Origin: Kudoa neothunni
Taxonomy: Eukaryota; Animalia; Cnidaria
Length of the DNA: 64,000 bases
Assembly: GCA_964304625.1 (NCBI GenBank)
Contig: OZ199840.1
Coordinates: forward strand, 8,457,487-8,521,486
Reading direction: 5' to 3'
Shown: in pieces, positions 34,715 to 64,000 of the stretch
Numbering within the stretch: the stretch's first letter is position 1
Layout of the letters: each line of letters starts with the position of its first letter
Notes under the pieces: model-generated
The model's input: only the letters and a program-made list of their open reading frames with translations
Database searches by the model: none
What the model was told of the DNA's origin: nothing
Program-made: the position numbers and the translations under genes

Positions 34715-37623
34715 CCCTCGTACACACATTGAGGGTCATTTTTGACCTTCCACTCTTTATTGGAAAATCTATGAAAATTACTCTGTTATTGATATGTATA
34801 ATATAAAATTCAGTTATTAAATATTCATAAAATTTTAAAAATAAGTAAAATAATTTTGAAGAAGAGATAAATCTGTGATTTTTAGCATGTCACGTGACTA
34901 TACAAACTCAAAATCAGCCGAACTTTGGTCTGTTTTAGCGATGGAAGGAGATGAACATGGAATTCTATTGGATGACACTGATTCTGAGTTTAACGACTAT
35001 TTAAATGAAAATCCCGCGTCCGATTATGATGATTCGGATGATGAAGCGGAATTTAGTACTGAATTGATTGTCTCGTTGACATCGAAAGATGGAGAAAAAT
35101 GGTCTAGACAACCAACAAGGAACCAACGAAGAACTGACGCGGAAAATATTTTTAAGTGCCAACCAGATTTCAAACCACATGTGCTAAAACGATCGGACAT
35201 CCTACCCATGACATTTTTAAACTTTTTTGACGACGAAATCCTTGATTCGATTGTTGAATGCACCAATCATCATATGAAAAATCATTGATAAAAATTAGCT
35301 TTGATTATTAAAGATGATTGAATGAAATATATTGATGGTTGCATAATAATTGGTGTAATGAAGGGTAAAAATATGGATATTCGTGAATTCTGATCATCAA
35401 AGTATGGTCAACCTACAATAAACCAGTCAATCTCCATTAATTTATTTGAAAAAATATCTTTGTGTATGTGGTTTCAAAATATACATTCCAAGTAAACCAG
35501 GACAGTATGGTGTTAAAATATGGGCTTTGGGCGACTCACAGAATGCCTACCTATTCAACGCAAAGGTATATATTGGAAAAGAAAATGGTGAAATACAGTT
35601 TAATCAAGGGGGAAATGTTGTGGAAACTTTATGTGAACCGATTTTTAAATCCGGTCGAAATATCACAACAGATAATTTTTTCACTACTCTTTCCCTCGCA
35701 ACATTTCTACTTGGCCAAAAATTGACAATTGTAGGAACTGATCGAAAAAACCAAAAATTTTTGACACCAGATTTTCAAATGTCGGAAGGAAATAAAGATA
35801 ATAGTCAGTCCTTGTTTCAAGATAAGTTCACACTCGTCAAATACAACTCTAAGAAGAACAGATCAGTTGTCTTGTTGTCAACACTTCACATAGATGCGAA
35901 TATTGATGAAGGAAGCCAAAAACCTGAAATTATATCTTACTATAATTCTACAAAAGGTGGAGTTGATACTCTTGATCAAGTAAGTAAGATATTTTTCGAT
36001 AAAAAGAAAAACACGATGGTGACCAATGACTCTTTTCTATAATTTGTTAGACATCATCGCATATAATGCCTACCTGTTGTATTGCCTAAAGCATCCCGCA
36101 TTCTTGAATAAATATAGAAAGCGAGCCAGTAGAAAATTTCTAAAATTACTCGCAGACGTGCTTTTAACATCTAAGAGTCCCAAAACAGGCATTTCACCTT
36201 TAAAAAGGTCGAAACCCTTACAAAACAATGTTATAAGTGGTGCCAATTTTGTATTCGTTCGAGGAGGTTAAAAAAATCAACGCAATGAGCATTATGCAAT
36301 AAAATGGCTTGCAAACTCCATAATAATGAAGAGATAATTTGTATTGAATATTTAAACTCAAAAAATATCGATTTGAATTTTAACTATCTAATAGTATACC
36401 TTTTTGTAAAATTAACCAACACCTAATAGATTCCTATTATTCTTCTTCTAATAAAATTTTGTGTTTAGTTTGACGAAAAATTGTTGTTCGATAAATTATT
36501 GTATAAGTTTTAATTTTAATTTTATCTTGTAATGGTCTTTGGGGTAAAATTTACCCCATGCTTTTTTTGATTCAAAATATTTCGAAAAATGTGAAAATTT
36601 TTTTAACTTGAGTAAAATATAATTCCTATGAGTAGTTTTTGTAGAAAGTAAGGAAATGTTAGATAAATTACTTAAACCGCATGCGCAAACATATGAAGAT
36701 GTGTTATTCTAATAATTTCATTGATGAATTTTTTTTAACAGGGGTTGAACATTATGTTGTTGACGCGAATGTCTTCTTATCGATGTTTCTTGCTGAAAAA
36801 TTGTTGGAAAAAAATTGACCATACAGACAATTACGTTAAAAACTAAAGATACCACCATGACTCCAATCATCACCAAATGGAACCCCTTGTGGCAGCATTT
36901 TTGTATTCCGTGAAAAGTATATGTTGGTATCTTATGTTACCAATGAATTAAAATGCGTGATTTTCTTAAAGAAATCGTTGAACAATTAAACAAAATATTG
37001 TTGATAACCAATTCCACAAACAAAGCAATAAAAACAGTTCTCAGCATTGTTTATGCATCCTAACAGGAACCTCTTCTTAATGTAAAGCGATCAACATGTG
37101 GATACAGTGAGAGGAAAAATGATAAAAAATCTAAATGGTGCGAAAATTGTTATATATTTTATTGTCCATTTCACGCATTTAAAAACTGTTTTAACTTCGC
37201 ATAACTGTCAAGAATTCGTTGTATGGTTGGTCTTAATATTTCAACTGGCACAGCACATTTAATTCTGTTGAATTAACGCAATTACTTTATTAACGAACAT
37301 CGATGTGTACCTGCATAAGACGGATCGTAACGAAACAGATTATCGCGTGGATTACGTTAAAATTTAATTAGCATTTGCCAGTTTTTCGTACATAGGAATT
37401 AAAAATGATTCTGCAATATTGATTATTAGATTTTTTTAAAGGGTTATAATTAAAAAAAATGTGGGGTAAAATTTACCCCGAAGTCCATTACACGTTCATC
37501 TCATCGTTTTTGGGCTCATTAGAGGGTTAAAAACGTTTTTATGTGTTTATTTTTTAGTGTGGGTCAAAGATGACATCCCCCATTACGGGTTAACGTCAGT
37601 TTTTTTGCACATGTGTACCAGGG
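34715..37623 (+). mobile_element. piggyBac transposon with degenerate transposase, containing a nested second piggyBac fragment
   Basis: TTAA|ccctcgtacacacat ... atgtgtaccaggg|TTAA. Transposase motifs YIPSKPGQYGVKIW, GRNITTDNFFT, YNSTKGGVDTLDQ; stops and an internal deletion near 35450. Confidence 0.9.
36522..37526 (+). mobile_element. nested internally deleted piggyBac of a second family
   Basis: Palindromes ggggtaaaatttacccc at about 36541 and 37463; right end attagaggg|TTAA (37527-37530), same as at 43768; relic transposase pieces (FLAEKLLEKKLTI, MLVSYV, Cys-rich tail). Left boundary approximate. Confidence 0.7.
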
Positions 37624-38682: not shown

Positions 38683-39551
38683 TCATAAATCTTTAAATGA
38701 ACGACTAATCACTCTCTCATTGAGTGGCATGATGTTTCGGAAATTGTCATGAAGATGACCGTCGGCTTGAGTCTTGTGTTTGCATTCCATTTTTCTTAAA
38801 GCATCCAAAAATTGGAACGTAGCACAAATAGGTTGTTTCATTACAATCCATCGAACATTTTCTGAGAAGGGTGGAGTGGTTAGGCTGCCTTTATATGTAT
38901 AGTATTCGTTGCTGGATGACGGTATTATTTTTTCCAAATCAATTGGAATACTTTCCGATGTCGAATCCACCTTTATCGATTTACGAACATGCGAAAACAA
39001 CTAGAAAAAATGAGTTGAATTTTCATCTACGTGATACAATCTACATTGGTATCCATAAATGAGATCCTTCTGGGACAGCGTTTTCTGGCTTGAACCAACA
39101 GGCCAATAACAGCGAGCTCATCACTTTTTTTTGTCTTTGCTGGATTATTTTTGGAGTGCACCAAATGCATTTCGGCTGCGTATGACTCATCATTGATAAA
39201 GTGTTCTGAACCGACATCATTAAAGGAACCCCAATGCAGATGCATTTGAAGGAATTTGTAATTTGTGCCATTAACTTTTATTGAAGGACCTTGGATGTTG
39301 TTACCTGCCTCCTTGAGTGTCCATTTTATAGTTTCTCCGGTGTTTTTGTACGAGAAACGAGCCATTTTGTATTTTATTTTCAAGAAATTTTTCTTCAATT
39401 TACAATCGTACTTTGTCTTGCAGGTGTTTATATTAACTGGTGATTGCTTCGATATCTTGTGTTGCGGATGTTTATCCATTCTGTCTTTTATGCTGAGCTT
39501 ATGTGTTTTTTCGCAGCAACTTTTACGTTCCTCAACGGATGAACCATCCAT
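38683..39551 (-). CDS. alpha-carbonic anhydrase, paralog 1
   Basis: QSPVNI, QMHLHWG, GSEH, EMHLVH, YKGSLTTPP, WIV, DNFR..MPLNER; intron 39001-39044. True start may lie further upstream. Confidence 0.93.
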
Positions 39552-40998
39552 TACAACTGTTATCTAAATGCATCAATCTATAGATACTCTCTTTCATCAT
39601 GCCCCATATTCACTTACATTTAGTTGTTTGTTACACAGAGGCCTCAGATCCACCATACCTACAACCACACATTACACACACACACACACACAAATGCATC
39701 ATCTGGATAATTACATGAACCTAATATCAATGATAGAATTATTAACCATAACTGTCTTGTCATTTTTCACCAACAACTCTTATGCGATTATTATTAGACA
39801 ATTAGACACGAGTTTTTAACTTCCACTAATATATCAATAATGTCTAATAACCATAACTAATCACGAGGAAATGATATTAGGGCAATTATGAGGCCAAACC
39901 CTATCAAAAGTAGCTTTATCTTTACTAATTCCTTTTCGAGCCTAACAACATTTAATACATATCTTATTAAGACAAAGCCGGGATCCACGCTTTCCCGATC
40001 GAAGGTGTGACTAGTGAATTGTTGAGACTGGGAAGGTTCGTGTCGGAATTTAAGCTAAGTTTTCAACGAAACAAAAAATCCGTTGGAATTAAGAGTAGCT
40101 AAAAAGGTTTCGAATTAAATTATTTTCATCAAAATATTTCTCAATCTAAATTAAAAAAAATAATTGTTTAAGATAATTATAAAGAACGATATGGTAGAAA
40201 AATAAATAATTACTTGATAAAGTATCCATGGATATTAATGATATTACATAAATTTTACTTTACTCTCAATCATTTTGCAAACGGAAAATCTTTATAAATA
40301 TTGTTTCATAGAATAAAATTCAACCGAGCAACTTCCTCCCACTCCTCCAATTCCCACTCTTTCGTTTGAGGTCATTATAGGATGTAGAAACTTCTTGAAA
40401 ATTACTGATTATAATAATTAAACAATCAATCTTTCAAAATATATATTATTTTGTAATATAAATTAAATTTCATGTTAAATGAAGTGAATTATTTGAATTA
40501 AGCGTAGAAACCTGTTTTTCATAAACATATTTTTCAATCCAATTAGAGAAACAAATATTTTAAATTATAAAATTATTTATGATATTTCAGAAGTTTCTAT
40601 TTCTCTAATCAATATGATAAAGTTCGGTTTTATGAGTGCGAGTAATGGTCAAACAATTTTAGAAGAAGAATATTAGTTTAATAAATGAGTAGGATTCGAT
40701 ATCGAACGTTAATATTTGATAGATTATTTTATTTAAATATTTTCAATTCATTATTTAATAATAGAAAAGTATGGATATAATAATTTTTAGACATCATAAA
40801 CTCGTGACTTGACAACCACAGCACCAAATTTAGCGCATAAAATAACAAGCGGGAAACTTGAAATGAAAATATTAATTTATATACTATTGAATATAATTAG
40901 CTTCTTTGAACAACTGATTTATTTTTAAATTACTCTAAACATTAAATGTCCGGTAACCCTTTCATTATCAAGAAGAAGGCACTACGAATGGCGGGATC

Positions 40999-41896
40999 TC
41001 AGAGTGTAGAGAACGAACGACCAATCACCCGATTGTTCAGTGGCATAAGCTCTCGGAAATTATCTACAAGTTTATTATTCTTAGAATGGTGATCAGAGTC
41101 TGTTTTTTTTAAATTTCTTAAAGCATCCATGAAAGCGAAAGAGGCGCAGATAGGATCTTTCATAACAATCCACTCGACATTTTCCGTGTAGGGTTTAGTG
41201 GTGAGACTCCCGTCATATGTGTAGTATCTTTGAGCATTTTTTGGGGGAATAAGTCCTTTTAAATCGATTAATAGACAATCAATTTTTCGATGAGGTATCG
41301 TAGACTTTTTTACTTGATCAAGTAACTTTTCAGTCATATAAAAATTATAATATGTATGTAAATAATTAGCTAAGTACATTTTTATCAAGAAACTTGTCGT
41401 TGTGAGTGCAATGGTTGCTCGCTCTAATAAACAAACCAATTACTACAAGTCCATTTTCTGCACTCATTGCCTCTTCAATAGTATAAGATGTGTTCCAATG
41501 AACCAGATGTAATTCGCCAGAGAATGATTTATTATCCAAACGGTGCTCAGATCCGATTTTATTATTAGAACCCCAATGAAGATGGAATTGGGTTAGTTGA
41601 AAAATACTTGACCTACTATCTGTTTTGAAATGCAAAAGAGGCACGACATTATTCGACATTTTTAGGTTCCATTTAATGGTTGATCCAATGTTTTCGCAAG
41701 AGAAATAGGCAGGACGGTATTCAATTTTTAGGTAATTATTTCCTTGGATACCAGTGTAGGTAGTGTTGGTGGTGTAAATCATAATAGGAGACTGCCTAGA
41801 ATTGCGGGTATGGAAACCCTTGTGGATGAGTTCGGTTTTCGGCTGTCTCGGTGAAAAACCATCTTTACCTTTTATGGTTGAGTTATAATTTTGCAC
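40999..41896 (-). CDS. alpha-carbonic anhydrase, paralog 2 (5' exon unresolved)
   Basis: RQSPI, QFHLHWG, GSEH, ELHLVHWN, YDGSLTTKP, DNFRELMPLNNR; intron 41326-41377 at the same position as in paralog 1. No in-frame ATG at the ORF start. Confidence 0.92.
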
Positions 41897-42619
41897 TTGA
41901 ATATCCTATACCTCAATTTTATATTTTCTCATATAATTAATACATAAAATTTAGTTAACAAACATTTATCACATCCGAGACTAATAAATCCGTTAAATTA
42001 TTGTATTCCTTTCCTAAATAAACAATCATGTCTCATTACTAACTTATGAAACATGGTTCTCTTACCAAAAAGCGAATATATCACAAATAAAAATAGATAT
42101 AGTATTCGAATCATTTTAAGCAGCTCTATCTATTTTCAAAAATCTTAAGTACATAAAAAGAATGAAATTTACCCTATGTTAATTGTTTTCAGTCAATTAT
42201 AATCTCCAATTATTCTGAACTAGCTTGTAAAAATGTCTACTTAAAGGTAAAACTCTCAGTTGACGTTGAACCAATTCGTATGCAATCTTTCGGATGTCGA
42301 AACATTCCTTGGTGACAAATAACGCTAAATTAGTACCCTAATGGGAAGATTTATTCCCAAGGAATTTATTCAAGATTAGCTTCCATAGGTGTGAAGGAGA
42401 GGTGGTCTAATATAAACTGTCTACGGGAAGGTTTACAAATTCATAGATAATTAACTACTATTTTGAGTCGTAAAAATTGCTTTCAACTGTTTCTATAAAT
42501 ACAACGAAAACGTCGACAATTTATTTGATTTATGGATTCATCATAAAAAATATCTAAATTTCACAAAAAATTGATATTTTTGATAAATGGCTGAAAGTGA
42601 TTTTTAACATTTTTATTAA

Positions 42620-43768
42620 CTCTCCATTGAATTTGGGGTGAATTTTTACCCAAACAAGAAGTTGTTGGTTCTATACGTGATTTTTTTCTCTTCACAAGAT
42701 AAGAATTTTTGCATATTCCTCCAAAATGGTGACTAATACATGATTTTAAAATATTATGACCTAAAATATAAAATCCGAGAAATTATAACAAGATTACTCT
42801 TGAATGAATTTTTGGGGGTAAACAATTACCACAGCTTTTTTTTACATTAATTGAAAGATAAAATAATAATTATTATATAACTTAAGTTTCATGTTTATTT
42901 GATGGATAAATTTGAAGTTATACGGTTATTACTTCTTCAAAGATCACGTGACTTTCCACTTAATTTCTTCGTCATGATAATAGGAATGGATTAGCCCATA
43001 GTAGTTAAAATGATTAGTCAAATTCTTTCAAAATTGATTACGAATATTTTAAACTCGATGTGTCGGAAGAATCTTACGAGATTGAAAATTGAGAATTGGG
43101 GCCAATCTACAATCAATAATGCCGACCTATGGTGTTGTTTTTCTATTTAATGGATTTATTATATGTAAATGCGTTTTTCATATACAAAAAAAACTTGGGA
43201 GAAAGTTTTTGAAAACAAGGCAAAATTGTTATATTTTTCCATTAATGGAAAGAAACATCCGTGCAGTCCAAAATCCTAAGAACTCGACCATATCTATTCT
43301 GTTACAACTCAGAACACCAAATAAAGGAACAATATTTTCAGGGCTTGAGTGTTTTTTTACTGCAAATTAATGAGAAACCCACCACTGCTTATTTCAGATG
43401 TATGAAACTGTTGCAAAAATTCATTTTGAGTGCTTGCGAATCTTATCCCCATTAAATGTTCTATTTTTTACGCATATAACAATTAAAATATTTATTAAAT
43501 CATATAAAATATGAAATCCACTCAAACATTAAACTTTAATCGAAAATTGTTATGGCGGATTCTAACGAATACAGTTTTCGTAGGATTATGAAGATTACTA
43601 CTAGGTATGTTAGTTGTTTTACAGCTGAATCTAGCCGCGGGAATTTGTCTATTTTTATTTTCTTATATCAAATATTTTTTATGGTTCGAATGGAGACATA
43701 AAAATCTGGGGTAATTTTTTACCCCAGAGTTCATCGGAGTGCAGTCGATTTTTAGGTACATTAGAGGG
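42620..43768 (+). mobile_element. non-autonomous piggyBac derivative
   Basis: TTAA at 42616-42619 and 43769-43772; subterminal palindromes ggggtgaatttttaccc and ggggtaattttttacccc; right end matches 37463-37530. Confidence 0.75.
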
Positions 43769-43882
43769 TTAAAGTAAAGGTTAATTAATGTTATTGTTTA
43801 TCAATTTAATTGAAATATTTTCATAAATAGTATAGTACATTTGTGTAAAATCTTATTGTTTCTATGAATTTATACACACAAC

Positions 43883-45011
43883 CAACGTTGCCAACCCAAA
43901 TCGGACATTCGGCCAAATTTTTTTCGAACAAATCAGAATTTTTCATAGGAATCAAATTAATATTTAATTGTATGTAAATTTGTAATTAACTCAGAAACTT
44001 CAAAGTTTTGATACCATTTGTTTATGTGTAAAAATGTCATCATTCGAATAAGATCATCTAATGTAAAGCACAACATTCTGTTTCTTCTGATGGTTTTGAT
44101 AGTTTCAGAAAAAGAAAATATTCTTTTCAAAAAATAGTTGATTAAAGTTAGTTAAAATAAAGATATGCTGTATTTTTCAATGGAAGGAAAAACTATTTTT
44201 CCGACAAACAACGCTCAAAAAGTCGATTATTGATATTTTTATCAATAAAACATTTTTTTGAGCCTGTTTAGTTCCTTTAGTTCCTCTAATTTCAATTAAT
44301 TGTATTACTGCCCTTCGTTCGATTTTTTAATAAAACAACAATTATACCTAGATGAGGTTTTATTTCGTATATACGATAATTCACCCTACTACAATTAAGA
44401 AAAGTTGATCAGGTAGATAGTATTTAGTTAAATTTTAATTTATTTAAGCATTAACTAAAATTATACTTTTTTCAAGATTGATAACAAACTTTTGTAATGA
44501 TAGCTTAGTATTGGATATCACCATCATCAGAGTCTGTTTTTCAATTCAAGCATTCAGAATTCCAACATTATAACATTCTTCGCAATCATTCCGAAATGGT
44601 TTATGGTCCTAGAAACTGTATCTTATCGCTAAAAGGGGGTGAAAAAATGATCCAAAAATTTTGGTCTTAATTGGAGCATAACATTTGAAGTGTGTTCAAT
44701 TCATAAATGATTGACATATTCTTTTTAATCACAATTTTTGTATTAAGTGAACTTTAAGAATTGATTACTAAAATGTACGATTGTAACTTGTCTTTGCTGA
44801 ATTTCTACTGTAGATATTTTAATTGGAAATATTGCATGTGTTCCAACTATAAGATTATCTATTTGAAGATTTTTCGTGACTAAATAAATAATGATTACTT
44901 TCTATTTTGTTGAATTGGCAATAATTTCTCACTTTTGATACACTGCCTTACGATTGTTCAATTTTTCGAAAAAACAAGAATGAAAAAATCGGGATGCGGT
45001 TGGTAACGCTG
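43883..45011. mobile_element. non-autonomous hAT-like element with 8-bp TSD
   Basis: TIRs caacgttgccaacc / ggttggtaacgctg; flanking cacacaac and caaacaac (7/8). Confidence 0.7.
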
Positions 45012-46175
45012 CAAACAACTTTTTTGAGGAAATAAGCTTTAAAAAGCAGAATTTTCCTTAAGTTATCTTTAAAATTTAAAATGATCATAATAAACTATTT
45101 ATTTAACCACTTTACAAAAAGAATATTCCCAAATTAGTAACTAAATATCTATTTTTGTATTAATTAAAATATATTTAAACATTAATTTATTATTACAAAC
45201 CGAAAAACAAGTGATTAAATTGGAAATTTTAAATAATATATTAAGATAATTCAACCGACATATTTTTTGGTGCGCGTAACTTAATAAAATATACTTTATC
45301 GCCCATCTGGCTCTCATTATTTGTTTGAAAAAATGTATAAACTAAAAATAAATATTTCCTAACTAATTAGTTATTTTGCGCAGCTATTTTTTAATTATAA
45401 ATGGATTTATGATATCGATGAAACTAAACAGCAATAATGTAACGCATGCGTTATAAAGTAAATAAATGTGTTTAATACATAATTAGCATCATCTTCATAA
45501 TTTCTAAAACATGTTAAAAAATATAAAACGAAAAAATAATCTTTAAATATAAAATAGAGATTTTGTATAAAATATTTCCAATAAATGTACATAAACTAGA
45601 TAAAAATATAAATATAAGTTGGATTAGTTACTTTTTTAACTTAGCAAACAATAACATAAGTATGTCAGTAGTGAAAATCAACAATAAATTATCACCTGAC
45701 CGGAATTCAATGAAAAATATTATTCAAACACATTTTATCTTAGTTTTAGAAATAATAGAATTTTACTATTAAAAAAAATACAGAATCACTATAGCCTTAT
45801 TATAATTATTTAAATAGGCGTAAGTTTTATCAACAAATAATATTATTTATTTTTTGGAATCAATAATATATACAAATTGAATGTGATACTTGAAAGTGCA
45901 TTTTATATGTTGGATAGGAACGTAAATAGGAACGTAAAGTTAAATAAATATACAATTGTTAAGGACAATACTAAATTACATATAATTTAGTAACCGAGAA
46001 TATTTTTCTCTTGGAATGTGAAAAATGGTCATCTCAAGCTCAAGTGAAAGTTATATGCGAATAAGGCTAAAAGTGAGGACTTTGTATATTGCATAAAAAT
46101 TAAACTGAAAAAATAACAATAATTCTTTCAACATCAAAATTAATTAATCGATCAATCAATTAATATGATAAAAAT

Positions 46176-47110
46176 TCAATTCAGCATATTGTAGAATGAA
46201 CGATAAATGATCCTCTCATTGAGAGGCATAATATTTCGAAAGTTGTGAGTGAGTGGCGAATTTTTTTTCTCATGCTCACTGTCTGATTTGATTGAACGTA
46301 GAGCATCCATAAATTTGAAAGAAGCACAAATTGGATCTTTCATTACGATCCATTTAACATTTTCAGTGTAGGGTGAAGTGGTAAGACTGCCATCGTACGT
46401 GTAATAGTCGCTGTTGTTATGGGGAAGTATCGCCTGTATGTTGATAACATCGGTCTCAAATTTTTTGTGTGGCGTGTCAACTTTGTTTACGTATGATAAT
46501 AACTACAACAATCAAAACATCAACACAATATCTATCATTACAATGATAAGCAATGTTAAGAAAAAATCACCTGAGTATCGAGGAAATTGTCATCACCGGG
46601 AGGGTTTTTCGTTGCTCTCACAAAAATTCCCAAAACCACTAATCCATCTTTTTCTTTCATAGCAACTTCAGGACTAAGGTAAAGCGACGAATTCCAATGC
46701 ACTAGATGGATTTCACCGGAAAACGACTCGTCATTGAGAAAATGTTCCGATCCCACTTCATTATTATATCCCCAATGGAAGTGAAATTGGGCCAATTTAT
46801 ATTCGTGAAGGTTGGCTGATGCTCCGCCCAATTTAATACTTGGTATCTTGTCTTTGGTTTGTGAACGGAGATATTCAAAAATTACGGTGTGCCCGTTGTT
46901 CTGATATTGAAAAAACGAGGGTTGGTAACGGACGGTGATAGGATTCATTCTCAAGCTGGAATCAAACACAGATTTGAATGGAGTTATCATAATTGGGGAC
47001 TGCTTGGAAAGGGAACCATTTGAGTTGTCATCCAATCCATCGATTAGTGCCAACCTTTTCGATTTATCACAACAAGGGGATGAACAATAAGGGTGATCTG
47101 TGCTGGTCAT
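46176..47110 (-). CDS. alpha-carbonic anhydrase, paralog 3
   Basis: KQSPI, NNGHTV, QFHFHWG, GSEH, EIHLVHWN; intron 46503-46570; then YDGSLTTSP ... HNFRNIMPLNERIIYRSFYNMLN*. Confidence 0.94.
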
Positions 47111-48192: not shown

Positions 48193-51100
48193 GGCACTGA
48201 CTATTCTTACGAGACCGTATAATCCCCTCTCGGGACTGGCTATTCTTACGACAATGAATATCTTTTTTCTTACTGAAGATACTTTAAATCGAAATTTAGA
48301 AACATTCTATTACATTTTTTTCCTACAAAAATGTAAGTTTTTATAAATTATTATTGCGATAAAACCAATACATATATTTTGGCCTTATTTCGCCATTATA
48401 AGTACTAAAAATGATTAAAATCAGATCTTCATTAACATTTACAACATTTTAAAGCATTTTTTAATCGAAAAATCATGAAAATTGTGCTAATGTAACTTCA
48501 TTCGATTATTGCGTCACGAACTACATCATATTTTAATTACATTTAGATCCGAAATGCAATTTTAAAAGCTTATTTTTAAAATTAATAATCTAATCTGTTC
48601 TATTTGTTTATAACATACTTCATTTATCTTGGTGAGTATAGCGACATAGTAACTACCTATTATTTCGTTCAAAATGATATATATTTTTCAGGTTAAGTAT
48701 CTGGAAAGATATTGAGGTTAATTGTATTTCATAATAATTACATTAAATAAATTTTAATAATATTATTGTCTTAAAAATTAGATAAAATGATTATTTCCTA
48801 CACCAAATAATTATACGGCATAATTTTAACAAAAAGATAAAACCTGCTAATATTAATTATCTTAAAAAATATAATATTTACTAGTAATTCATTACATATA
48901 TTAACAATTTGTTTCCGAGTCTGTTAATATCCCCAAACATGTTAAAGTAAAAACGTTATGTTGCGCAGTATTATGGAAATCATGGATTGTGAACAGTCTG
49001 CTGACTTCTTTATTGGAATGAAATTTGATTCGTACGAAAAGTTACAAATTAAAGTGAAAGAATACGAAGAAAAACATTTTTGCAATTTAAAAATTAGACA
49101 TTCGAGAAAAATTTCAAATGCACAACGAAGAGTAAACAGATCCATAAATTCCCAGTTGGTTTATTATGACATTAATTACGTGTGTTTCTTTGGTGTTCCT
49201 TACAAACGCAAAAGCAGTGAGATAGAAACAAATTATCATTTAAGAAGGAATGCCCATTTATTATCTCGCTCCGGAGCACTGTGGACGGTAACTTTTTCGA
49301 GGTGAAATCGCTAAATTTAATCCATAACCATTCCTGCGATCAAAGAATATTCGAAAACCTTCCTCCACAAAGAAAAATTAACCTTGATGATCCAATATAT
49401 CGGAGTTAATATCATTAGGAGCAAATAGAAGGTTAATTCAATGTGAGTTAAGCGGAGAAACCGAAAGAAAATTACATTAAAATCTATCCATAATGTAAAG
49501 ACTGTTTCTACCTTCGAACCGAAAATATTGACTCCGTTATTACAATATTGAAAAATGATTATAATTGCAGAGTTAAAATTCTTGCTAGTGAAAATTCTGT
49601 CAATGGAATTTTCTTCGTGGATAACGAAATGCTTCATGTTCTTGAATGTTTTTCTGAGCTATTATTCATAGATGCCACTTATAAGCTGTTGGATTCAAGG
49701 TACGAAAACCCTATTTTATAACAAATGACGATTGTATTTATAGAGCTCCTCTTTATTTAACTGCATCTCAAGACTCTTTTGGTTTAACCCCATATCACTA
49801 GTGCCTGTATTTTATATGAGGAGACAGCAGAAGCCATAACATGGTTTCTGAACGAATTGTTAGATGCTGCACCATGGTTGCGATCCGAAACGATGTCAAT
49901 AATAACTCACAAAGACCATTTGTTACGAAAATGTTTAAGTTTCGTATTTCCTTCCACAAAGTTGATACTATGTAAATTCCATGTATTACAAGCGTTCAAG
50001 CGGGAAATAAAAGTGGGAAAGTATGGTATAACAACCGAAACAAAAACACTTATTCTTCAAATATTAGAAAAAATGACTCATGTCAAGAACAAGGAAAAAT
50101 CTTGACCGCTTAGCTTATGTTGTGAACTTTTTGACCTCGGAGTTGAGGAACTTAATGATTATTTCAAAAAGAATTGGCTATCCATTTACCAGGAATGGAT
50201 AATTGGATTAAGTATGGCTGAGCATTACTATAATAATACAACGGATAACAGAATTGAATCCATTAATGCAAAACTAAAAACTGTAGTGAAAAAGTTTTCA
50301 ACTTTGAGTGATTTTTTCGACAATTTCTTCCGATTTTTGAAATCGCAAAGGATTGAGCGGCAAAGCAACATTGCTATGGAACTAATAAAACCATACGATT
50401 TTTCCAACGATAATGAGACTTTCATAAAATATCATAATTATCTCACGCCCTATTCTTCAAGTATAATCCAGGAAGAATCATCAAAAATAAAGGACGCCAC
50501 TTTAGAAGAAAATTCCAGTTACAATTCCTGTAATTGTTCAATGCATAAAGCATTCAAGCTTCCTTGTCGTCATATTCTACAAAAACGTGCACTCAACTTA
50601 ATCAACTTGTTTGATGAATCATTGTGCCATTCTCGTTGGATTAGGGAGCATGCGAATAATTTCTTAAATGTTATAATTTTAAAGATTTTCATGATGAGGG
50701 AGTTGTAAAAATCAAACCTAAAGACACTATCCAAACCCCTTCTCAAAGATTAAGACTGTCTTCAGTGCTTACAAAAAAGTTGGCGACTACATCTGCAGAG
50801 TTTTGCGGAGATTATTTTCAAACTTCCATTGAAATTTTTAGAAGACTTGAATGTGTGATTAAAAATCATGATACGAAAATGATGTCTACTATAAATGAAC
50901 TAAGTTATTTACTATTTGTTGCAAATGTGTGGAGTATATTAGTGAAAATAAATTTGAGAGAAGATAACGCTTTCACTGAAATCATATCCACAAATCCTGA
51001 GAGTGAATTGTCTTACACAAGTATTTAGTAAATGAAAATATTTTATTAATATAATTTAAAACTAAGATGATGAATATAAGGAAGAAAAATACGGTAAACT

Positions 51101-52803: not shown

Positions 52804-55800
52804 CCATTTAACGATCCTAAAGTCGACTTACCTCAAACGATCATTTGTGGTTGAATTGATAATACTTTTTAATTTATTTTTCTTTACTAAACAGTTTATT
52901 TTATAGTTTTATACAATATAAAAGAAATCTATTCACAGAGTTTTGAGTAAATTCAAGTTTACTAACCCATTAATATTAATCTCAAGTAATCTGCTAACGT
53001 ATGGATCTACGCAATTTCACTAAATATCGTTAATTACACATTGAGGAAATAGCCATAACATTGTGAAATGAGATTAATCTAATATTAGCGCCTATTACAA
53101 TTTTATTGAAATAAAAAACTTGTTTATGACTGTATACGCTAAAAAATAACGTATTCTAACGCACACAACTACATATATAATATATTATTTCGATTCGATT
53201 AATTTTTTGCAATTTTGAAACACTGAATGCAAAATTTTGCTGAATCTTATCTGCAGAAATGGCGGATGCACAACCTACAAATAACAACAGTCTTTCGGTC
53301 ATTTTTATAGGAAGATTTGACAGCTGCAAGGTTTCATTATTCGTTTCGATGTCAATGGAAATGAGTTTGATGTTTGATGGTGGTTTTTCAATATTTTATT
53401 TACTAATATTTTTAGCAGTATTGGATTTTACACGTTCTCGAAAATTTCTTCATGAAATTTAAACCTAAAAACTTTTTTGTTAAATATTTCTTTACATACG
53501 AAAAATGAATATACAAAAAATATTCTAAACGTTAAAACAATTATTTTAGTCAAACGCCAGAAAACGACCGAAAGCGTGAACACCTCCCTTTGATTTTTTG
53601 TAGTAAACAATAAATTACGGTTTTTATCTCGCCATGTTGATGATAATATTGTTCATTGAACTGAGTGATAGCAGATTGACATACTCATTTTTTACTCACC
53701 TATGATAATATCCCATTTTTTCGCAGTACACAAATGAGGTGCTGTAGAATTGCGTTGTTTTGAGGGAAGACACAAGGTGGTAATCCTCTCTTATTTTGGT
53801 GGATTGTGCCCAATAGATTAAGTTTTCTTTCATGTAATTTATCGGACAGGTTTATTGAAATGAACACATTAAATTAAAAAATTTTTGGAACCAGATCCCC
53901 ATAAAAAATTATCTTATCAAATGGCGATAGCGAAAGAACATCAAGGAAAATAATAGGCAACCAAAATTTTCTAATTTTTTCCATTTTTCGCCTTTTAAAA
54001 ACATAACTGACAAAGAAATGTCTAGGAACGCTTTTTAACGAAATATGTTTCATTGGCTTCATCTGTTTGTAAATTCTATTTTATTGTAGAGATCATTTCA
54101 TTTTGCAATAATTATCGATTAATTCATCTTCCACCTTCATTATATCGTTCTATTCAACAAGAAAATTATCAATATCTCTCCAGTTAATACCTCTTTCAAG
54201 TTTTTTTCGGAAGATTTCCAATATTCCGGGGAAATAAACGTCGAAACTTTATCAAAAATTCGACGACTACATTGGATTTTAATCAAAAATTACGATCTCT
54301 AGTTATAATATTTCGCCCAAAATAAAAAGGGGTTCAATAAGATACAAAACAATACAGTATTTCAAGACCTAAATGCAACTGCGTCCGATCAAAATGCAAC
54401 CCCATGCAATAATGTCCAAAAAAGGAAATATGTTATCTTAAGTGATGATATGAAACAAATGGCAGTTTCACTAGCTGAAGTTCATAACCTCTTTCGTATG
54501 ATTTCAAATTATTTCTAGGATGGATACTCTAACAAATACATTGCCGAGAAAATGGGTGTACATAAATCAACCATTGGGCGCATTTTGAAGACAAAATCGA
54601 TGACTACTGAATTAAGTTCACTAAAAAAGAAAGGGGGTGATAGACGGTCAAAATTGACTGAAACCCATAAATTATACATCCGCGAACTTTTGGGGGAGGA
54701 TTGCACCATTACATTAAATTCTATTACTGAAAAAGTTCTAGAATTTTTTGGTATTAATGTTTCTCGTCAAACAATTGCGAATTGTTTGAGAGATTTCCAT
54801 TATACCTTAGAAAATTTCCATTGTACCCCTAGGAAGAAATTCTCAGGATTGCATTGAAACGAGAAAAAGGTTTATTATCATTTTAAAAAAGTGCGTAAAA
54901 ATGAATAGATACGTGATACAATATCTGGAACTGAAGCCTCGTCATTCTACGGTCATCTATATAGATGAATCGGGCTTTTCATTGTCAATGAGAAGAACAT
55001 TTGGACGAGCACTTTCAGGGTCAAGAGCGAATCTGAAAGTGAAAAGCATTCGCTCTAAAACTATTACATTAATCGCGGCAATAAGCTCGGAACGGGTGTG
55101 GACATTCCACGTAGAAAATGGAACTGTCAACCAACAAGTTTTTTCTATTTTCATAGACAAACTATTTTCCGACTTAAGCTGCAGTGGAGTTGATAACGCC
55201 CTATTAATAATGGACAATGTGAGATTCCACAAACCATATGTTATTATTTCTTCCGCCATACTCTCCGTTCCTCAATCCTATTGAGGAGTTCTTCCATCAA
55301 ATTAAGTCCATTGTAAGAAACTGCGGGACCATTTAATCAGGAGGAATTGATCAACGCAATTATGACTAGCTCAGATGGAGTTTCTTGTGACCAACTACAA
55401 AATTATGCGAATCATGCGGAATCCTATTTCGCAGCATGTATTAATTCGGAAGAAATTAACAATTAGATTAATTTTACGTTGTGCTAAAAACATGAAGTTT
55501 AATTTGGTGCCAATTAACATTTCATTTTTGTTTATGCATGTCAAGAAGATTACAAATTTAAAAGTGGTAATTAAAGAAGCAGTAAAATCTTACATTGAAA
55601 CAGTATATTTTTGAGAAGCGTAAGTATCGAGAATGACACCTTGATTAAATCGATGACAAAAATGAATAAAAATTTAATTCCTTTATGTATTTAAATAAAT
55701 ATGAGTAAACTCTATGAGTACAAAAAATTATTTGATGCAATTCGTTAATCACAAAATTCGAAATATTATTCACTCTATCATAACTAACCATGTAGAATAT

Positions 55801-57164
55801 TGTTAAAAAATATCTTAATTTTATACAAATTAAATCTAAAAAAATAAGTTGTTTATGTAAAAAGTTGCATTTTGATCCGACGCAGTTGCATTTAGGTCTT
55901 GAAATACTGTATTTTCGCCAAGGGTTCCATTGGGCGATCATTCAAAAAAATTCTTTTCCCAATGGACATCAATGCTATGTACATAGATAATTAGAGATGG
56001 AGTCAACTGTCATGACAAATTTTGTCTCATATTTTACTCCGCATTTTGTTGGCATATATTGCCTAAATTGACATTTAGTTTTAAATGGAACCAATTGCTC
56101 GTCAATTATTAGGTCTTCATTCGGAGAAAAACACTTCAACAAATTCATTTTCCATTAACTCCATAACGCTCTAATCTGGCGTTATTTATCTTTCTCTCTT
56201 CTTTCAGATCTTTTAGTTATACCATCAAAATGTAATGCTCGCGTAATTTTTTTAAATCGAGAAAAATAAACAACTCTAGATGGATGAAATTTCTTTCATT
56301 TGTGCTAAATAGTTCATCAAACGACTTCTCTTGATTAATGAGGACGCCCATTAGTAATGGAATCTTGATATATCCTTATAGTTCAACCTGATCAACATCA
56401 GTCCATTCATTTTTGAAATACTGTGCTCCAAAAGAATTTTTATGTATCAATATTGTGTCGATCATTTCTGAAATAAAAAAATCCATCAAGGATTGATTTG
56501 ACCCTCAGAGTCGTATAAATTTTTGAACCGGGCGGAGAACTCAAAATATTTTCTGCGCGTGTTCTTGATGTATTATGTGGTTTTGTCGGGCTCCAAATTA
56601 ACTCATCTTCTCTAATTAATGAAGTATTATATTTATATCGAGATTGTCGCCATCACCAATTGTATCATCCACATAATCACCACCAGAATACTCATCGTTT
56701 TATAATATAAAATTAAATTAAGATTTAATAGAAATCCTCCCAACATCAAATTGTTAATAACAGAAAAAATATTTTATATCAACCAGTGCAATCGATAGCC
56801 GAAATCTCGCACGAACAGTTTTTCGTTAGGTTACGCAAGATTAGTTCACGTATTAATTTTGTTTTTCCTTAGAATTCTGTCGATAATTTTTTTAAATATC
56901 TCATATAACAAATTTAATCATAATTATATAGAAAATGACGAAATAAAAAGATGGGGTCGAATCGACCCCCAATGATCGTTGGAGGGTATCCTTCGAATTT
57001 TGACTACATAAAAAAACCTAGATTATCCCATGTTCTTCAGTTATATAGCAGAATATATTTTAAAATAATAACTCGAATTTTAGATCATTAGAATTAAGGG
57101 AGAAAAAGTTACTAGTTGTTCAATTTTATTGTGGTTGATTCGACTCCAAATGATCGTTAGATGG
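52804..57164 (-). mobile_element. piggyBac transposon, decayed, interrupted by a Tc1/IS630-type element
   Basis: TTAA|ccatttaacgatc ... gatcgttagatgg|TTAA; palindrome ggggtcgaatcgacccc at about 56953. Minus-strand transposase relics (EDLIIDEQLVPFKTKCQFRQYMPTK; LIEPL...GRNI) continue across the Tc1 insertion. Confidence 0.88.
54355..55909 (+). mobile_element. Tc1/IS630-type DDE transposon (1555 bp) with 46-bp TIRs and an intron-containing, frameshifted transposase
   Basis: TA|cagtatttcaagacctaaatgcaactgcgtccgatcaaaatgcaac and its inverse at 55864-55909|TA (45/46 identical). HTH IAEKMGVHKSTIGRILK; DDE motifs YIDESGF, IMDNVRFHK, FLPPYSPFLNPIEE. Frameshift near 54810 and a deletion after DNVRFHK. 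Confidence 0.95.
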
Positions 57165-57957: not shown

Positions 57958-59767
57958 TCAAGGGTTTATTGGTTCGCTGAACTCAGATTCATCAAATTCT
58001 GTTGATTTGTATGGAGTAATTCTCAGACAATTAGAGATCTTGTTTCTCATCAGTATTAAAGCAATAATTGCCGAACATAACACAAGGAAAACACCACAAG
58101 CTATTCCTGTGATGAGTGGCTTGGAGATCTTGCTTGCTGGTGTAATATCAACTATTGTTGCTCTCTGTGAAAAACGCGGGTCAGTTTCGGCATATCCAGC
58201 AACCCATGAATAATCAGGACCCTTTAGAACGTGTGGAAAGTTATTTTCATTAAAATAAATATATGAAAAGTATACTTTAAGGGTGTAATTTAAATTATAT
58301 TTTTTAATGATAAATTCCAAGTACAACAAATAATAATGTAATATGTAGCATTCATGGAACCAATTTTCAAATTCCACCTGCAAATAAATATACAATTATA
58401 GTTAAAGAAGATATGTACCGGCCAAGAAATCCTCCATATCAAAAATTCATCACATTTGGAAATAGGGAGATGACTTAACTCACTAATTTTCGTATTTAAT
58501 TTAACATTAAGTGGAAAATAAATCTATTATTAATTAAATCAAAAAATAAATATTATAATGATACAATAAGTTTATCATTTGATGTGAAATTCAAAGAAAT
58601 CACCAAGGAGGCGTCACATAATTTTTGTAACAGTTTAGAATGATTGTTAAAATATCTCTGCACAATATTTTTACATATTTCTCCTTTAAAAGACGCGCTG
58701 GGCATTAGTGGGAAAAGTTTTATATAATTTAAGGTGAGCTCGGAACAGTTATTTTTATTGGCTATCTCCCAAACATTCAATACAGCTCCAATGTTTACAC
58801 TACTGCAGGTACTAGTATCTACTGTAAGATCTTGATGTATTTGTGCCTATAAATTAAAAACGTGCGAAACGATTCTAAATTTTAAGGTGGTACGTTTGAA
58901 TTGAACTCTTTAAAGGATAGGTTTCGTATTTTCTCAGAAAAGTAACTGTCTCCAGCAAGAATTGTCGTGTTAGTTCCATTCCAAGTTATAATTTTTTGAC
59001 GAGTACCGAAAGGTAATTGGATTTGGTTGGTAGTGGTAACAATTTTTGCGAAAGATAGCGCATTATCATCAAATGAAATAAACCCATCATAATATCCAAT
59101 TTTAATCTAAAGGTTTAATTAATTAAACCACATTTTTTTCTTGGCTTATACCGAAAATAATTTAGTTGTCAGGAATCTATATGCTGCTATATCGGATACT
59201 TCAAGAACAGTTAAGAATTTTCGACCTGGAACGTTGGAATATCGCTTAAAACTACCATTCAAAATATCCACAAAGCGATTATAAGTTGATCGATGGGCTT
59301 TCCTTTAATGAATATTCATAATTTATCTTAAGAAATGTATACACCTTAATCGAGTCCATTTAGCTCCACCGAGATATTCAAAGTGAATATTTTTCAGATT
59401 GACACCTTGGAGGATTTGATTTTTCCTTACTGAATTTATGCAGCGACTGATCCTACCTTCCAAATACAGATTCGGATAATCATCAAACATGTGATCTAAA
59501 CCCATCATTCTATTATTTATTTATCAAAAAGCTTACTGCTTTCAGAACATAATGAGTGATCTAGCTCTTCTACAACCGGAGATTGTTGATAAATGTTAAA
59601 TTGATAGATATAAGCCTTCAAACCATCTGATACTGCATGTATTAATACTCCATACTATAAATAAACACATAAAATATTCGTAAAGGTACTCATTATACTT
59701 TTAGGTAGCTCTCACAACTGGAATATTTAAAAATACATATAGACCATAAAATCATTAACAACCTCAT
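57958..59767 (-). CDS. GDA1/CD39 (ecto-NTPDase/apyrase)-like type I membrane protein with degenerate apyrase conserved regions, paralog 1
   Basis: Spliced by eye without stops: signal MRLLMILWSICIFKYSSC; YGVLIHAVSDGLKAYIYQF (ACR1-like); FEYLGGAKWTRLR (ACR2-like); VLEVSDIAAYRFLT (ACR3-like); DGFISFDDNALSFA (ACR4-like); GPDYSWVAGY (ACR5-like); TM LITGIACGVFLVLCSAIIALIL. Order and spacing follow CD39. Confidence 0.72.
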
Positions 59768-62700
59768 TGGTGATTAGTGTAGCGGTCTAAAAACGGATTA
59801 TTGTATCGGTAAAAGGGGACCTTTGTAGATAATGTATTTTTAAAAAAATTGGTAACTTCGATTTATAAATTACAATTCTTAATAAACCAATAAATATTAT
59901 TTTTTTAAGATAAATAAAGAAACATAAAAATCCATGTTGAATAACAATATTTCAAATATACCCGTTGATGAAATATTTGTAAAAATAATTTATTGGGTTA
60001 TAATTATCATTATTTTATATAAAATATATATTCACAAAACAATACGAATTGAACTTCCAATTCCGAAGAAATTATTTAAATAATTAAATTATTATTCGAT
60101 AATTCAATATTAAATATGCTCGTAAATCGCCGTAAAACTACGGTCGCCTAAAATTATCTGACAAAAACTTAATGTAATCCTATTTATCATCTGAAAATGA
60201 TATTCAAGTAAAGATAATACTGTTAATTATTGTTGGCAGGTCAGATTTATTACAATTTTTGTTCTTCAAAAGCTCCTTAGAAATTTTATGTGATAAATGT
60301 GACAATTTGCACAGAGGATTAATTATAAAATTTTAAAGGCAGAGGCTATTGGCACGGTAAAAGTTAATCATAAACGGCATGTACGCACGCGCATTAAAAT
60401 TTTTAAATCCCAGAAACTCTTACCTACAGGTCGTTTACTGATTTAATTGTTTAGAATTTGCTATATTTAATTATTTATCGTGTCAATAGCCACCTCCAAT
60501 TTTAAATAGTTTATTTTTAGATGATTTAAATATAAATGCCTAAATTAATTAATCTATGATCATCATACTTTAGAGTAAACGTGAATATGACTAAATTAAG
60601 ATTTAATAAAAACAAGCTGAAATTAAGCTGTTTTTATCGGAAAATATATTTTTTTCTTTTATTATCTTGGACATAATGAGATTTTAAAAATATTGAATAT
60701 GTAATTGTTTCGTTAGATGTTTATTTTTTCCATTTTATTGTAATTACTACGACTAACAAATAATTTGAAGTTAACTATTTAAATAAGTTAATTTTCTATC
60801 TTAATAATTTATGCTTTTAAATTATATTAAAAACACGGACTGAATTAATAATTAAATAGAAAATGAATTTTATAATGCTAGATGAATTCTCCCAAATCTA
60901 AAAATTATTAAACAGAATTCGAATTTTTTAATTTCTGTTCAACTATTTAACATAAACATTTATTTATGTAACTCAAAATTTACCACCAATTATATTATTA
61001 TACCAATTAATTTATTTTTATAATATAAATAATGTAACTTGCTGATCGAATATATTTTACAATAAGCAATAATGCTATTATTAAACTATCTGGGAATTTA
61101 AACAACAATTTTCCATTTTATTTCAATAAATGTCTAAATAACATCCTTTTATTTTAAATAGTTTTAAAATTTTCTACATTTAATACCGCTCTACATAATA
61201 AAACTTTTGGGGAAAGATGATAATATTTATACAACCTCTCTCGCCCTAATAATTAGCAGCAATGAAACATAAAAAAATCTTATCATTGAACGGATTAATT
61301 AATTGTATACGATAGGTTTTAAGATATTAAAGTTTATATTTTTGAACTATTCATGTTAAATAATTCTACCTTTAATTAAAAAAACGAACATTTTTTGTTT
61401 AAAAATAGATTAGTTTTAATAATTATATTTTGAGAAGAAAAATACTGACTTGTTCGGCAACAATTGATATTAAAGAAAAAAACATATTGTTACTTCATGC
61501 ATCGTATCCTAACACAGATTCAATATTGTTTTCACTTGAGGATGTATCAAAACTAGCTGATTTTATCTGTCTATTCATAGTTCATCTAGAAATGGATTTT
61601 TAAAATATAATCGCTCAGAATATTAAAAAATTTCAGCCCGGAGTTTTCAGAATCAGAAAATATATTTTGAAAAGTAAAAAATATCTAATAAACTAATAAA
61701 ATAAAAAGAAATTTGCCATTGTTTTTATATCAAATGTTGTAGTGGAAATAATTGTGTTATGTATGATCTTCCCCTCGGCAATTAATATATTATAGTGAGA
61801 TATAAATTTTGTTTTTCATCTGTTAATGGCACAGATAATGATATTCATACAAATATTTTGTAAAAATAAAAATAAAAGAAATGTAATGTTATAAATATAG
61901 AATTTCAAATATTCCATGTATTAAATTTTTGTTAAATATTCATAGATATCTGCTATGTTGCTTCTAACATTAGCAGTTAACACTACCTTCCAATTAAAGT
62001 TAAGAAAAAATTCGAAGTATAAATTAGACATAATTATTAATTATATCCTTTAACATGTGATTAGTTCATATGCTTTGTATTTACTAAAGAAAGTTTAATC
62101 TGATGTGTACTCATATCGTTCATTTATTTATTTATGTTTTGGCTGAAGTTTTTTTACTTCAAATATAGGCGAATTTCTTTGTAACTTCATATAAGGGGGA
62201 TATTTTTCCATTTGGAATCTTAACAAAATTGCTTATACCTGTCGTCTGCGTGGCTCGATTTTTATAAGAACACCCATTTATATTGTTATCATCATTAACA
62301 GTCTCGGACTATTAGATTGAAGAAATTATTTATATATCAAACATCAGTCTTTATAATCCTGACTCATTTTACGAACAAAATTTGTTCATTTTTATGTAAA
62401 CCCCTCTATTGTATAATACATGATTATAGCATGAGGGGTTTTTTATTATTTTAATTCTAAATTTAAATCTATTTTTGAATGAAGAAATTAATGAGCTTTT
62501 GTCAAAGAAAAGTTGGCCTCAGAAATATATTCATTTTCTAACAAATTTTTATTTCCAGATTAACACCCAATAAAATTCAAGTTAATTTTTTACTTAAATT
62601 GAAATTGTTGATTGATTAAATAATACGTTAAAAATAAAAATTGACGCTAAATGCTAAATGAATCTGTACATTATAATAATATTTATTTCATGATGACGTC

Positions 62701-62802
62701 ATAGAACAAACGAATGGAAACCAAACGAAAGCAATGATGATAAAAATTTATTTTTAGAATATGAATCGATATAACTCTTCATTAGGGAAAAATATTAGTG
62801 TA

Positions 62803-64000
62803 CTAAAATTTTAAATAGGTTTCATTATTCAGTTGGTTCGTTGGATAGTTATATAGAAGGGTTGCAATCTGTCTTCTCATCAGTATCAAAACGACACCTA
62901 TCGCGCCAATCACAATAATAACCAAAACCCCCACAGTTATCCCAACAATGGCTGCTGTGGAGAGTGAGTTAGCTGAAGTAATATCAACTATTATTGCTCT
63001 TTTCAAAAAACGTGGATCAGTGTAGGCGTATCCATCAAGAAAAGAATAATCCGACATCTAAAAAACGAATGCAGATGTTGACATCAGAATAAATATAAGA
63101 GAGGATACTTTAAGGGTGTGTTTTAATTTTAACTTTTCAGTGTTAAATTCCAAGTATAGTAAATAATGTTGTAACATGATGCATTCAGTTAACCAATTTG
63201 GATATTCAGTCTATGATTGGATGAATAAATAAATAAATAAATTAATAGAGTAAGAAAGTAAATTTACATCCCAATTAGGCTTAAATTTAAAATATTCATC
63301 ACATTTAGAAATGAGAAGAGGTCGTATTTCGTTTAGTTTCGCAGGTATACTTTGACTTTGGGTTGTGGAGGTTAGATCTGGAAAATATGTCTAAAATTAA
63401 TCAATAAAGACAATATTCATTAGGATTTTACAATTATCTCATTAATTGAAGTAACATTAAACGGGATTGGTTTTGCTACGTCACAAATTTTTTTGAATAT
63501 TTTCTTATTATCATCTAAAAATGTCAGTACGGATAGTTTGCAACGCTCAATTTTAAATAAAGGATCTGCTATATATGGATGAATTTCCACAAAATTAGAA
63601 GTAAATCTTAAACAATTTTCTTGATCTTTAAGTTTCCAAAAGTCTATTACAATCCCAAGAGTTTTACATGGGCATGGATTCGAAGTCACCGTACGTCTTT
63701 TAAACGTTTCCTAAAAATTAATTTTTTTATATTCTCGATTGCTCAAAATAATACACTTGAATCAGACTCTTGAGCGGACGGATTCCATATTTCTTTAGAA
63801 TATGCACTATCTCCAACTAGAACTGTCGTAATCGTTTCATTCCACTTGATTATTCTTTTGCGAGTTCCAGGTGGTGTTTGACTGGAATTGGTGCTAGTTT
63901 GAGCAAATGTTAAAATATTTTCATCAAACGATATAAATCCATCAAAGTTTGTATTTTCCCTCTATAATTATAACTCGATAAAAGCTCGGAATTAATGCTA
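62803..64000 (-). CDS. paralog 2 of the NTPDase-like membrane protein (5' part beyond the window)
   Basis: Colinear with paralog 1: FDGFISFDENILTFA, PGTRKRIIKWNET, KCDEYF, ECIMLQHYLLYLEF, DYSFLDGYAYTDPRFLKRAIIVDIT, TM IVGITVGVLVIIVIGAIGVVLIL; corresponding exon boundaries. Confidence 0.75.

Follow-up and report, generated by a model that had tools for sequence, protein, structure and literature searches.

Background

Ecto-nucleoside triphosphate diphosphohydrolases (ecto-NTPDases) are known as enzymes by which parasites damp the purinergic signalling of the host, and the roles of their phosphate loops in nucleotide binding are established knowledge of NTPDase structure and function. Myxozoan proteomes are tiny and full of unannotated lineage-specific genes; to our knowledge, almost nothing is known about myxozoan surface molecules. 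This report considers a stretch of 64,000 nucleotides from Kudoa neothunni (assembly GCA_964304625.1, contig OZ199840.1, positions 8,457,487 to 8,521,486 of the forward strand), referred to below as the window. Its positions 57958-64000 carry, on the minus strand, one complete gene of nine exons (gene 1) and the five 3' exons of another (gene 2). Both belong to a family of 17 members, which, we believe, probably goes back to duplications of a CD39-type gene in this genome, kept the scaffold of the enzyme, lost its phosphate loops and now supplies non-catalytic surface proteins.

The closest described systems are the cell-surface ecto-NTPDases (NTPDase1/2/3/8; PDB 3ZX3, 3CJ1, 4CD3). The family resembles them in size (about 480 aa), in the order of the segments that correspond to apyrase conserved regions (ACR) 1 to 5, in an ACR5-type W..G before the C-terminal transmembrane (TM) helix, and in a cysteine-rich ectodomain predicted to be glycosylated. 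Unlike them, it lies below the level of Pfam detection, comprises 17 fast-evolving copies and has the ACR1 Asp, the ACR1 Gly-Ser, the ACR2 ATAG and the ACR4 Gly-Gly-x-Ser replaced; in place of their second TM anchor, its N-terminus looks like a cleavable signal. Pseudoenzyme families that parasites have turned into surface or secreted binding proteins, such as the one with a catalytically inactive cathepsin B paralog in Trichobilharzia (PMC7054455), offer a parallel: they too keep an enzyme fold without its catalytic residues and have multiplied into paralogs, although the fold and the family are different. Full-text literature searches returned no catalytically dead, non-catalytic expanded or pseudo-NTPDase family, and NTPDases are mentioned neither in the K. 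neothunni assembly paper (PMC12239612) nor in a preprint on Kudoa mitochondrial genomes, which measure 15.9-19.4 kb (bioRxiv 10.64898/2026.02.11.705288).

Results

The strongest evidence for an NTPDase origin is gene structure. Gene 1 occupies 59767-57958 on the minus strand and, in a GT-AG splice model, has nine exons of 69, 118, 151, 151, 213, 282, 105, 102 and 264 nt with introns of 41-54 nt, coding for about 485 amino acids (aa). Its last intron (58275-58222, 54 nt) is in frame and stop-free; it was placed by homology with gene 2, in which the homologous position holds an intron with in-frame stops. The canonical CD39-like gene of the genome lies at C1:884081-885849 (L026:4849-3081, minus strand) and also has nine exons, of 81, 133, 148, 166, 204, 285, 99, 93 and 189 nt. 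The intron phases of the two genes are identical (0,1,2,0,0,0,0,0), with a chance probability of roughly 1e-3 to 1.5e-4. The sizes of the seven internal exons agree within 15 nt each (r=0.99), and a difference that small is found in 4 of 5,040 permutations (p=8e-4). In a naive splice model the phase pattern over the seven introns between exons 2 and 9 recurs in eight other paralogs, and four further ones, gene 1 included, differ only by read-through of one in-frame intron. The NTPDase4-like gene on C2 has another architecture, with no intron before ACR1 and with ACR2 to ACR4 in a single exon. Shared gene structure supports common descent of the family from a bona fide GDA1/CD39 member.

The CD39-like gene is divergent; its first exon is signal-like, and its product ends in a TM helix region at the C-terminus. 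Its motifs are canonical, namely FGFIFDAGSTGTR, FIGTGGLRNL, EAEYDF, VVDIGGSSLQV and NWTLGKML, the last followed by the helix; the ACR1 motif includes DAGSTGTR. Unlike the family, it is single-copy, keeps DAGSTGTR, GTGGLR, DIGGSSLQ and NWTLG, and matches PF01150 (GDA1_CD39), although per exon it falls below the Pfam cut-off (E=3e-4 and 20 bits for the ACR1 exon, E=0.14 and 11 bits for exon 6). It is likely to be the active ecto-NTPDase of the organism, and likewise the parent of the 17 copies. An 8x8 HMMER matrix of family exon hidden Markov models (HMMs) against the CD39-like exons gave a diagonal of 10.9 against a permuted mean of -6.8 (standard deviation 4.9, p=0.0017). In a MAFFT alignment seven of the eight conserved cysteines, those of exons 2, 3 and 8 and four of exon 6, coincide with cysteines of the CD39-like gene.

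All profile, family and fold comparisons were made exon by exon or on natural stop-free read-through frames. Because standard Pfam and HMMER tests were negative, a reference alignment of 46 NTPDase sequences was built; its members were gathered by word-based protein searches, which served this purpose because queries of exon length do not retrieve proteins of full length. Against the profile of this alignment, hhalign places the exon-2 profile exactly on the ACR1 hairpin (Prob 77%, P=2e-5), the family consensus YGViIh..aYIYkf matching the NTPDase consensus YgVIVD.GSSGSRahIY. For exon 4 the top local match is ACR3, at non-significant levels (P=0.2, or P=0.03 in a restricted window). The order of the exons was assessed by chaining custom profile-profile scores exon-wise with TM segments masked. 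The true order scores 66.6, against a mean of 49.9 (standard deviation 2.9) in 400 column shuffles (z=5.8), and 0.5% of 5,040 exon orders score as well (p=0.005). Without exon 2 a modest signal is left (z=2.0, p about 0.03), and the best chain still runs through ACR2 (at the end of exon 3), ACR3 (exon 4), ACR4 (exon 5), the Cys region (exon 6), the C...L helix (exon 8) and ACR5 (exon 9).

The motifs can be followed along gene 1 (all coordinates on the minus strand). The initial annotation, made from the letters alone, had described two intact, spliceable, strongly diverged paralogs with a C-terminal TM segment and CD39-type motifs with replaced residues. The GT-AG models bear this description out: each gene closes with a hydrophobic helix and then basic residues, the two differ at dN 0.46 (non-synonymous substitutions per site), and the quoted motifs are present as written, in the same register against NTPDases in profile or MAFFT alignments. 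Exon 1 (59699..59767) begins the gene, by ORF (open reading frame) and splice model, with the start codon; it codes for a peptide that is short (23 aa), hydrophobic and signal-like, and a phase-0 intron comes next. The peptide was read directly from the sequence and agrees with the signal proposed for this copy. Exon 2 (59537..59654) codes for the ACR1-like beta-hairpin YGVLIHAVSDGLKAYIY and an invariant Cys. YGVLIHAVSD aligns here with YG.I.DaGSsG.R, so that the phosphate-1 Asp is replaced by His. Across the family this column holds His in 12, Tyr in four and Asn in one of the 17 copies, and the Gly-Ser-x-Gly that should follow is unconserved; the DxGSxGxR phosphate-1 loop is absent, and the hairpin scaffold nonetheless matches at the P value given above. 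Exon 3 (59345..59495) has a helix with an invariant Cys (I..CI) and then the ACR2-like strand IHFEYLGGAKWTRL, in which LGGAKWTRL aligns with IGTGGLRNL / ATAGMR; among the exons of the CD39-like gene it scores best against the one that carries ACR2 (6.4 bits). The family replaces ATAG/GTGG by G-[RG]-x-x-W.

Exon 4 (59152..59302) contains the ACR3-like segment FLTVLEVSDIAAYRFL. EVSDIAAYRF aligns here with ISG..EG.Y.W, ACR3 being the top local hhalign match of this exon (P=0.03-0.2), and Ile occupies the column of the catalytic-base Glu. The absence of the catalytic Glu, claimed for the pair, thus stands for gene 1 and fails for gene 2 (ADEATY), as it does for most of the family, 11 of 16 copies of which have Glu in this column. 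Exon 5 (58894..59106) codes for the ACR4-like strand DGFISFDDNALSF and carries N-glycosylation sequons. The segment GFISFDDNALSF aligns with G.IELGGASxQV, and Asp-Asp stands in place of the Gly-Gly of the phosphate-2 loop; in the aligned columns S-F-D-[DE]-N-[AT]-L-S stands for [DE]-x-G-G-x-S-x-Q, and none of the 16 aligned copies has Gly-Gly. The ACR4 register is taken from MAFFT and from the chain test, with no significant score of its own; an alternative in which the D of YDGF is the ACR4 acid is disfavoured by MAFFT and by the NTPDase consensus. The motif DGFISFD is conserved in gene 1, gene 2 and most of the family, as had been noticed for the pair.

Exon 6 (58565..58846) codes for a four-Cys region and diverges most between recent copies. 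Exon 7 (58419..58523) contains IYFP...SKCDEF, and exon 8 (58276..58377), which ends at the intron 58275-58222, a W...C...YL.YL helix with an invariant Cys. Exon 9 (57958..58221) supplies the ACR5-like W..GYA.TDPRF, the TM helix, a short basic cytoplasmic tail and the stop codon; YSWVAGY aligns here with DWTLGA. The ACR5-like motif immediately precedes the TM helix, and of the 17 copies 14 retain its Trp and 15 its Gly; of the pair in the window, gene 1 has Trp and gene 2 has Phe, just as first described.

Paralogs were collected by single-exon searches of the whole assembly followed by jackhmmer on six-frame translations of the loci. What had been taken for an isolated tandem pair proved to be part of a 17-gene family: six tandem copies at C3:8515447-8548113, of which the window covers the first one and a half, ten at C1:15849045-15942640 and one at C2:11457540-11459356. 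Exons 2, 3, 6, 8 and 9 were found in 17 of 17 loci and exons 4 and 5 in 16, with no stops in the matches. Every paralog has a C-terminal TM helix and N-glycosylation sites; in the aligned ectodomain exons the six C3 copies show 2-8 sequons and 7-8 cysteines. A signal-type first exon was found in gene 1 and in three other C3 copies. Three of the C1 paralogs depart from the compact layout: in the one at C1:15856399-15861625 (L009) an insertion of about 3.6 kb separates exon 4 from exon 5, and those at C1:15915411 and C1:15940378 have gaps that exceed a simple splice model, possibly transposon insertions in introns.

By the Nei-Gojobori method dN/dS (the ratio of non-synonymous to synonymous rates) is 0.32-0.53 over six paralog pairs; for gene 1 and gene 2 it is 0.43, with dS about 1.1. 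Genes 2 and 3 are near-identical in exons 2-5 (proportion of synonymous differences, pS, up to 0.08) and differ in exon 6 (pS 0.41), which agrees with patchy gene conversion in the C3 array. When 1.84 billion representative proteins were screened with the profile of exon 6, six matches came back, all of them fragments of 80-122 aa, and no full-length family protein. The fragments come from short contigs of other samples, with about 30-35% GC and the same exons and motifs; the family is therefore present in related organisms. With 17 intact copies, dN/dS of 0.3-0.5 and only exon-sized relatives elsewhere, the earlier proposal of a lineage-specific family under selection is supported.

For structure prediction with AlphaFold, a natural reading frame of 111 aa (L005:6171-6503, minus strand) was folded with the exon-2 and exon-3 rows as the alignment. 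The resulting model of an N-lobe fragment has a mean pLDDT of 76.9 and a pTM of 0.68, with low confidence in an intron-coded loop (residues 42-58). Its order of elements, b1-b2-b3-a1-b4-a2, is that of the first subdomain of actin-like ATPases, and it aligns to residues 40-174 of rat NTPDase2. In a Foldseek search all E-values exceeded 0.3, and about twenty of the rows listed were NTPDase1/2 or a Legionella NTPDase. An ESM Atlas look-alike search with the exon 8-9 reading frame gave noise (top score 0.81), and an NTPDase HMM run by HMMER on the six-frame loci stayed at noise level.

The part of gene 2 inside the window, 63961-62803 on the minus strand, comprises exon 5 (63755..63961, with FDGFISFDENILTF), exon 6 (63432..63710, the four-Cys region), exon 7 (63268..63390), exon 8 (63109..63210) and exon 9 (62803..63057), which carries the ACR5-like motif with Phe replacing Trp (YSFLDGYAYTDPRF), the TM helix, the tail and the stop codon. 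Its exons 2-4, and probably exon 1 as well, fall immediately outside the window, beyond its end (L004, about 208-805); at L004 about 690-805, in the region of the first exon, the signal-peptide exon HMM matches two pieces in swapped order. Stop-free in-frame introns are found in gene 1 (58222-58275) and, between exons 2 and 3, in four paralogs (L005:6171-6503(-), L009:2384-2713(+), L021:5039-5356(-) and L017:4934-5248(+)). If retained, they would add roughly 18-28 residues to the protein and cause no truncation. They are notable because frequent intron retention has been reported in myxozoans (PMC12239612).

The window DNA is AT-rich, with about 30% GC and very short introns; the published assembly has three chromosomes, 30.4% genomic GC, 49-bp introns and 5,316 proteins (PMC12239612). 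A bacterial-style ORF reading of the window was rejected, and a scan for bacterial promoters and terminators is irrelevant to a eukaryote. Elsewhere in the window, three tandem alpha-carbonic-anhydrase coding blocks (39027-47110, minus strand; PF00194, E 1e-27 to 5e-32) form another local tandem expansion in this very small proteome. Transposon debris lies around the array at 229-1985, 34875-36042, 48958-50708, 54405-55400 and 55975-56148; it includes a retroelement gag-pol, a piggyBac-type transposase (PF13843), a second piggyBac-like fragment and a weak SWIM zinc-finger match (PF04434) below the Pfam cut-off.

Discussion

We presume that the family arose by duplication from the CD39-type ecto-NTPDase gene of the same genome and diversified by tandem duplication and patchy gene conversion under what appears to be moderate purifying selection. 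The predicted protein would start with a signal-type first exon; its ectodomain, about 430 aa long, would be glycosylated and braced by disulfides, and a single C-terminal TM helix would lead into a short basic tail. In its hydrophobic strands, its cysteine framework and its exon layout the ectodomain still follows the NTPDase scaffold; the residues of ACR1 DxGSxGxR, of ACR4 [DE]xGGxSxQ and of ACR2 are replaced. That both phosphate loops are gone speaks against nucleotide binding of the canonical kind, and we infer that activity has been lost, so that the proteins would neither bind nor hydrolyse nucleotides in the canonical way and may have a binding or structural, non-catalytic role on the surface of the parasite. 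A role as surface receptor, adhesin or antigen is plausible in view of the number of copies, how rapidly they diverge, their predicted topology and their glycosylation sites. The derivation from NTPDases with degenerate motifs, suggested at the outset, gains from the ACR1 profile match, the exon chain, the gene structure, the cysteines and the actin-like-ATPase-type model of the N-lobe fragment. The reading of the family as an NTPDase-derived pseudoenzyme is well supported by evidence that converges, most pieces of it being individually modest.

Several results weigh against this reading. A match to PF01150 had been proposed as a check, and none was obtained: the six-frame genome scan gave zero matches in the window (its only hits were C2:7278507-7279569, the NTPDase4-like gene, and, weakly, C1:885630), and the single exons of gene 1 had no PF01150 match at E<=10 and no relevant Pfam match. 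The exon-level hhalign matches other than ACR1 are individually non-significant, as are the family exon HMMs against the CD39-like gene. HMMER searches of PDB sequences with the ACR1 and ACR4 exon profiles returned chance matches only and no NTPDase, and exon 6 folded alone (pLDDT 81) found no structural neighbour. One could argue from the missing Pfam and HMMER matches, from the single exon that is significant in hhalign and from structural matches that do not single out NTPDases that the resemblance is coincidental or convergent, and that the family is an unrelated lineage-specific membrane glycoprotein, perhaps with another actin-like or RNase-H-like module. We consider this very improbable, since exon number, intron phases and exon sizes are shared with the CD39-like gene, the exon diagonal is significant (p=0.0017), the cysteines are aligned, the ordered chain lands on all ACRs, and the ACR5-like motif stands directly before the TM helix as in that gene.

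Another objection concerns chemistry rather than descent. The Glu kept in the ACR3 column of most copies, together with the recurrent His and acidic residues at the former phosphate loops, seems to leave room for altered chemistry, and the proteins might still be enzymes, or nucleotide or phosphate binders, with a new site made of the ACR1 His, the ACR3 Glu and the ACR4 acidic pair. The replacements are indeed conserved (His in 12/17, Glu in 11/16, S-F-[DE]-[DEG] in most copies) and dN/dS is below 1. We nevertheless find the proposal improbable: essentially no copy retains either glycine-rich phosphate loop or the ACR2 ATAG, the inter-strand residues vary freely among paralogs, and gene 1 is without the ACR3 Glu. 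The least probable alternative is that the genes are unexpressed, or decaying and functionless. By the standard of enzyme families, a dN/dS of 0.3-0.5 is relaxed; against decay, exons are open and splice sites preserved in each of the 17 copies, across about 1.5 kb of coding sequence and with dS already at about 1, and the motifs are conserved in the contigs of other samples.

It is tempting to go beyond a non-catalytic NTPDase-derived family and to see in it one of the main families of coat or recognition proteins that Kudoa presents to its host, used in host-cell attachment, immune evasion or capture of host ligands, and the first described non-catalytic branch of GDA1/CD39; we regard this extension as possible and rather unlikely. 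If it were true, about 0.3% of a proteome of roughly 5,300 genes would be given to a retooled CD39 scaffold.

Conclusions

Where genomes evolve very fast, homology that escapes profile searches can be recognised from exon-intron structure. For myxozoan biology, one of the larger myxozoan families would thereby gain an evolutionary origin and a predicted topology, and its members may serve as candidates for host interaction or diagnostics.

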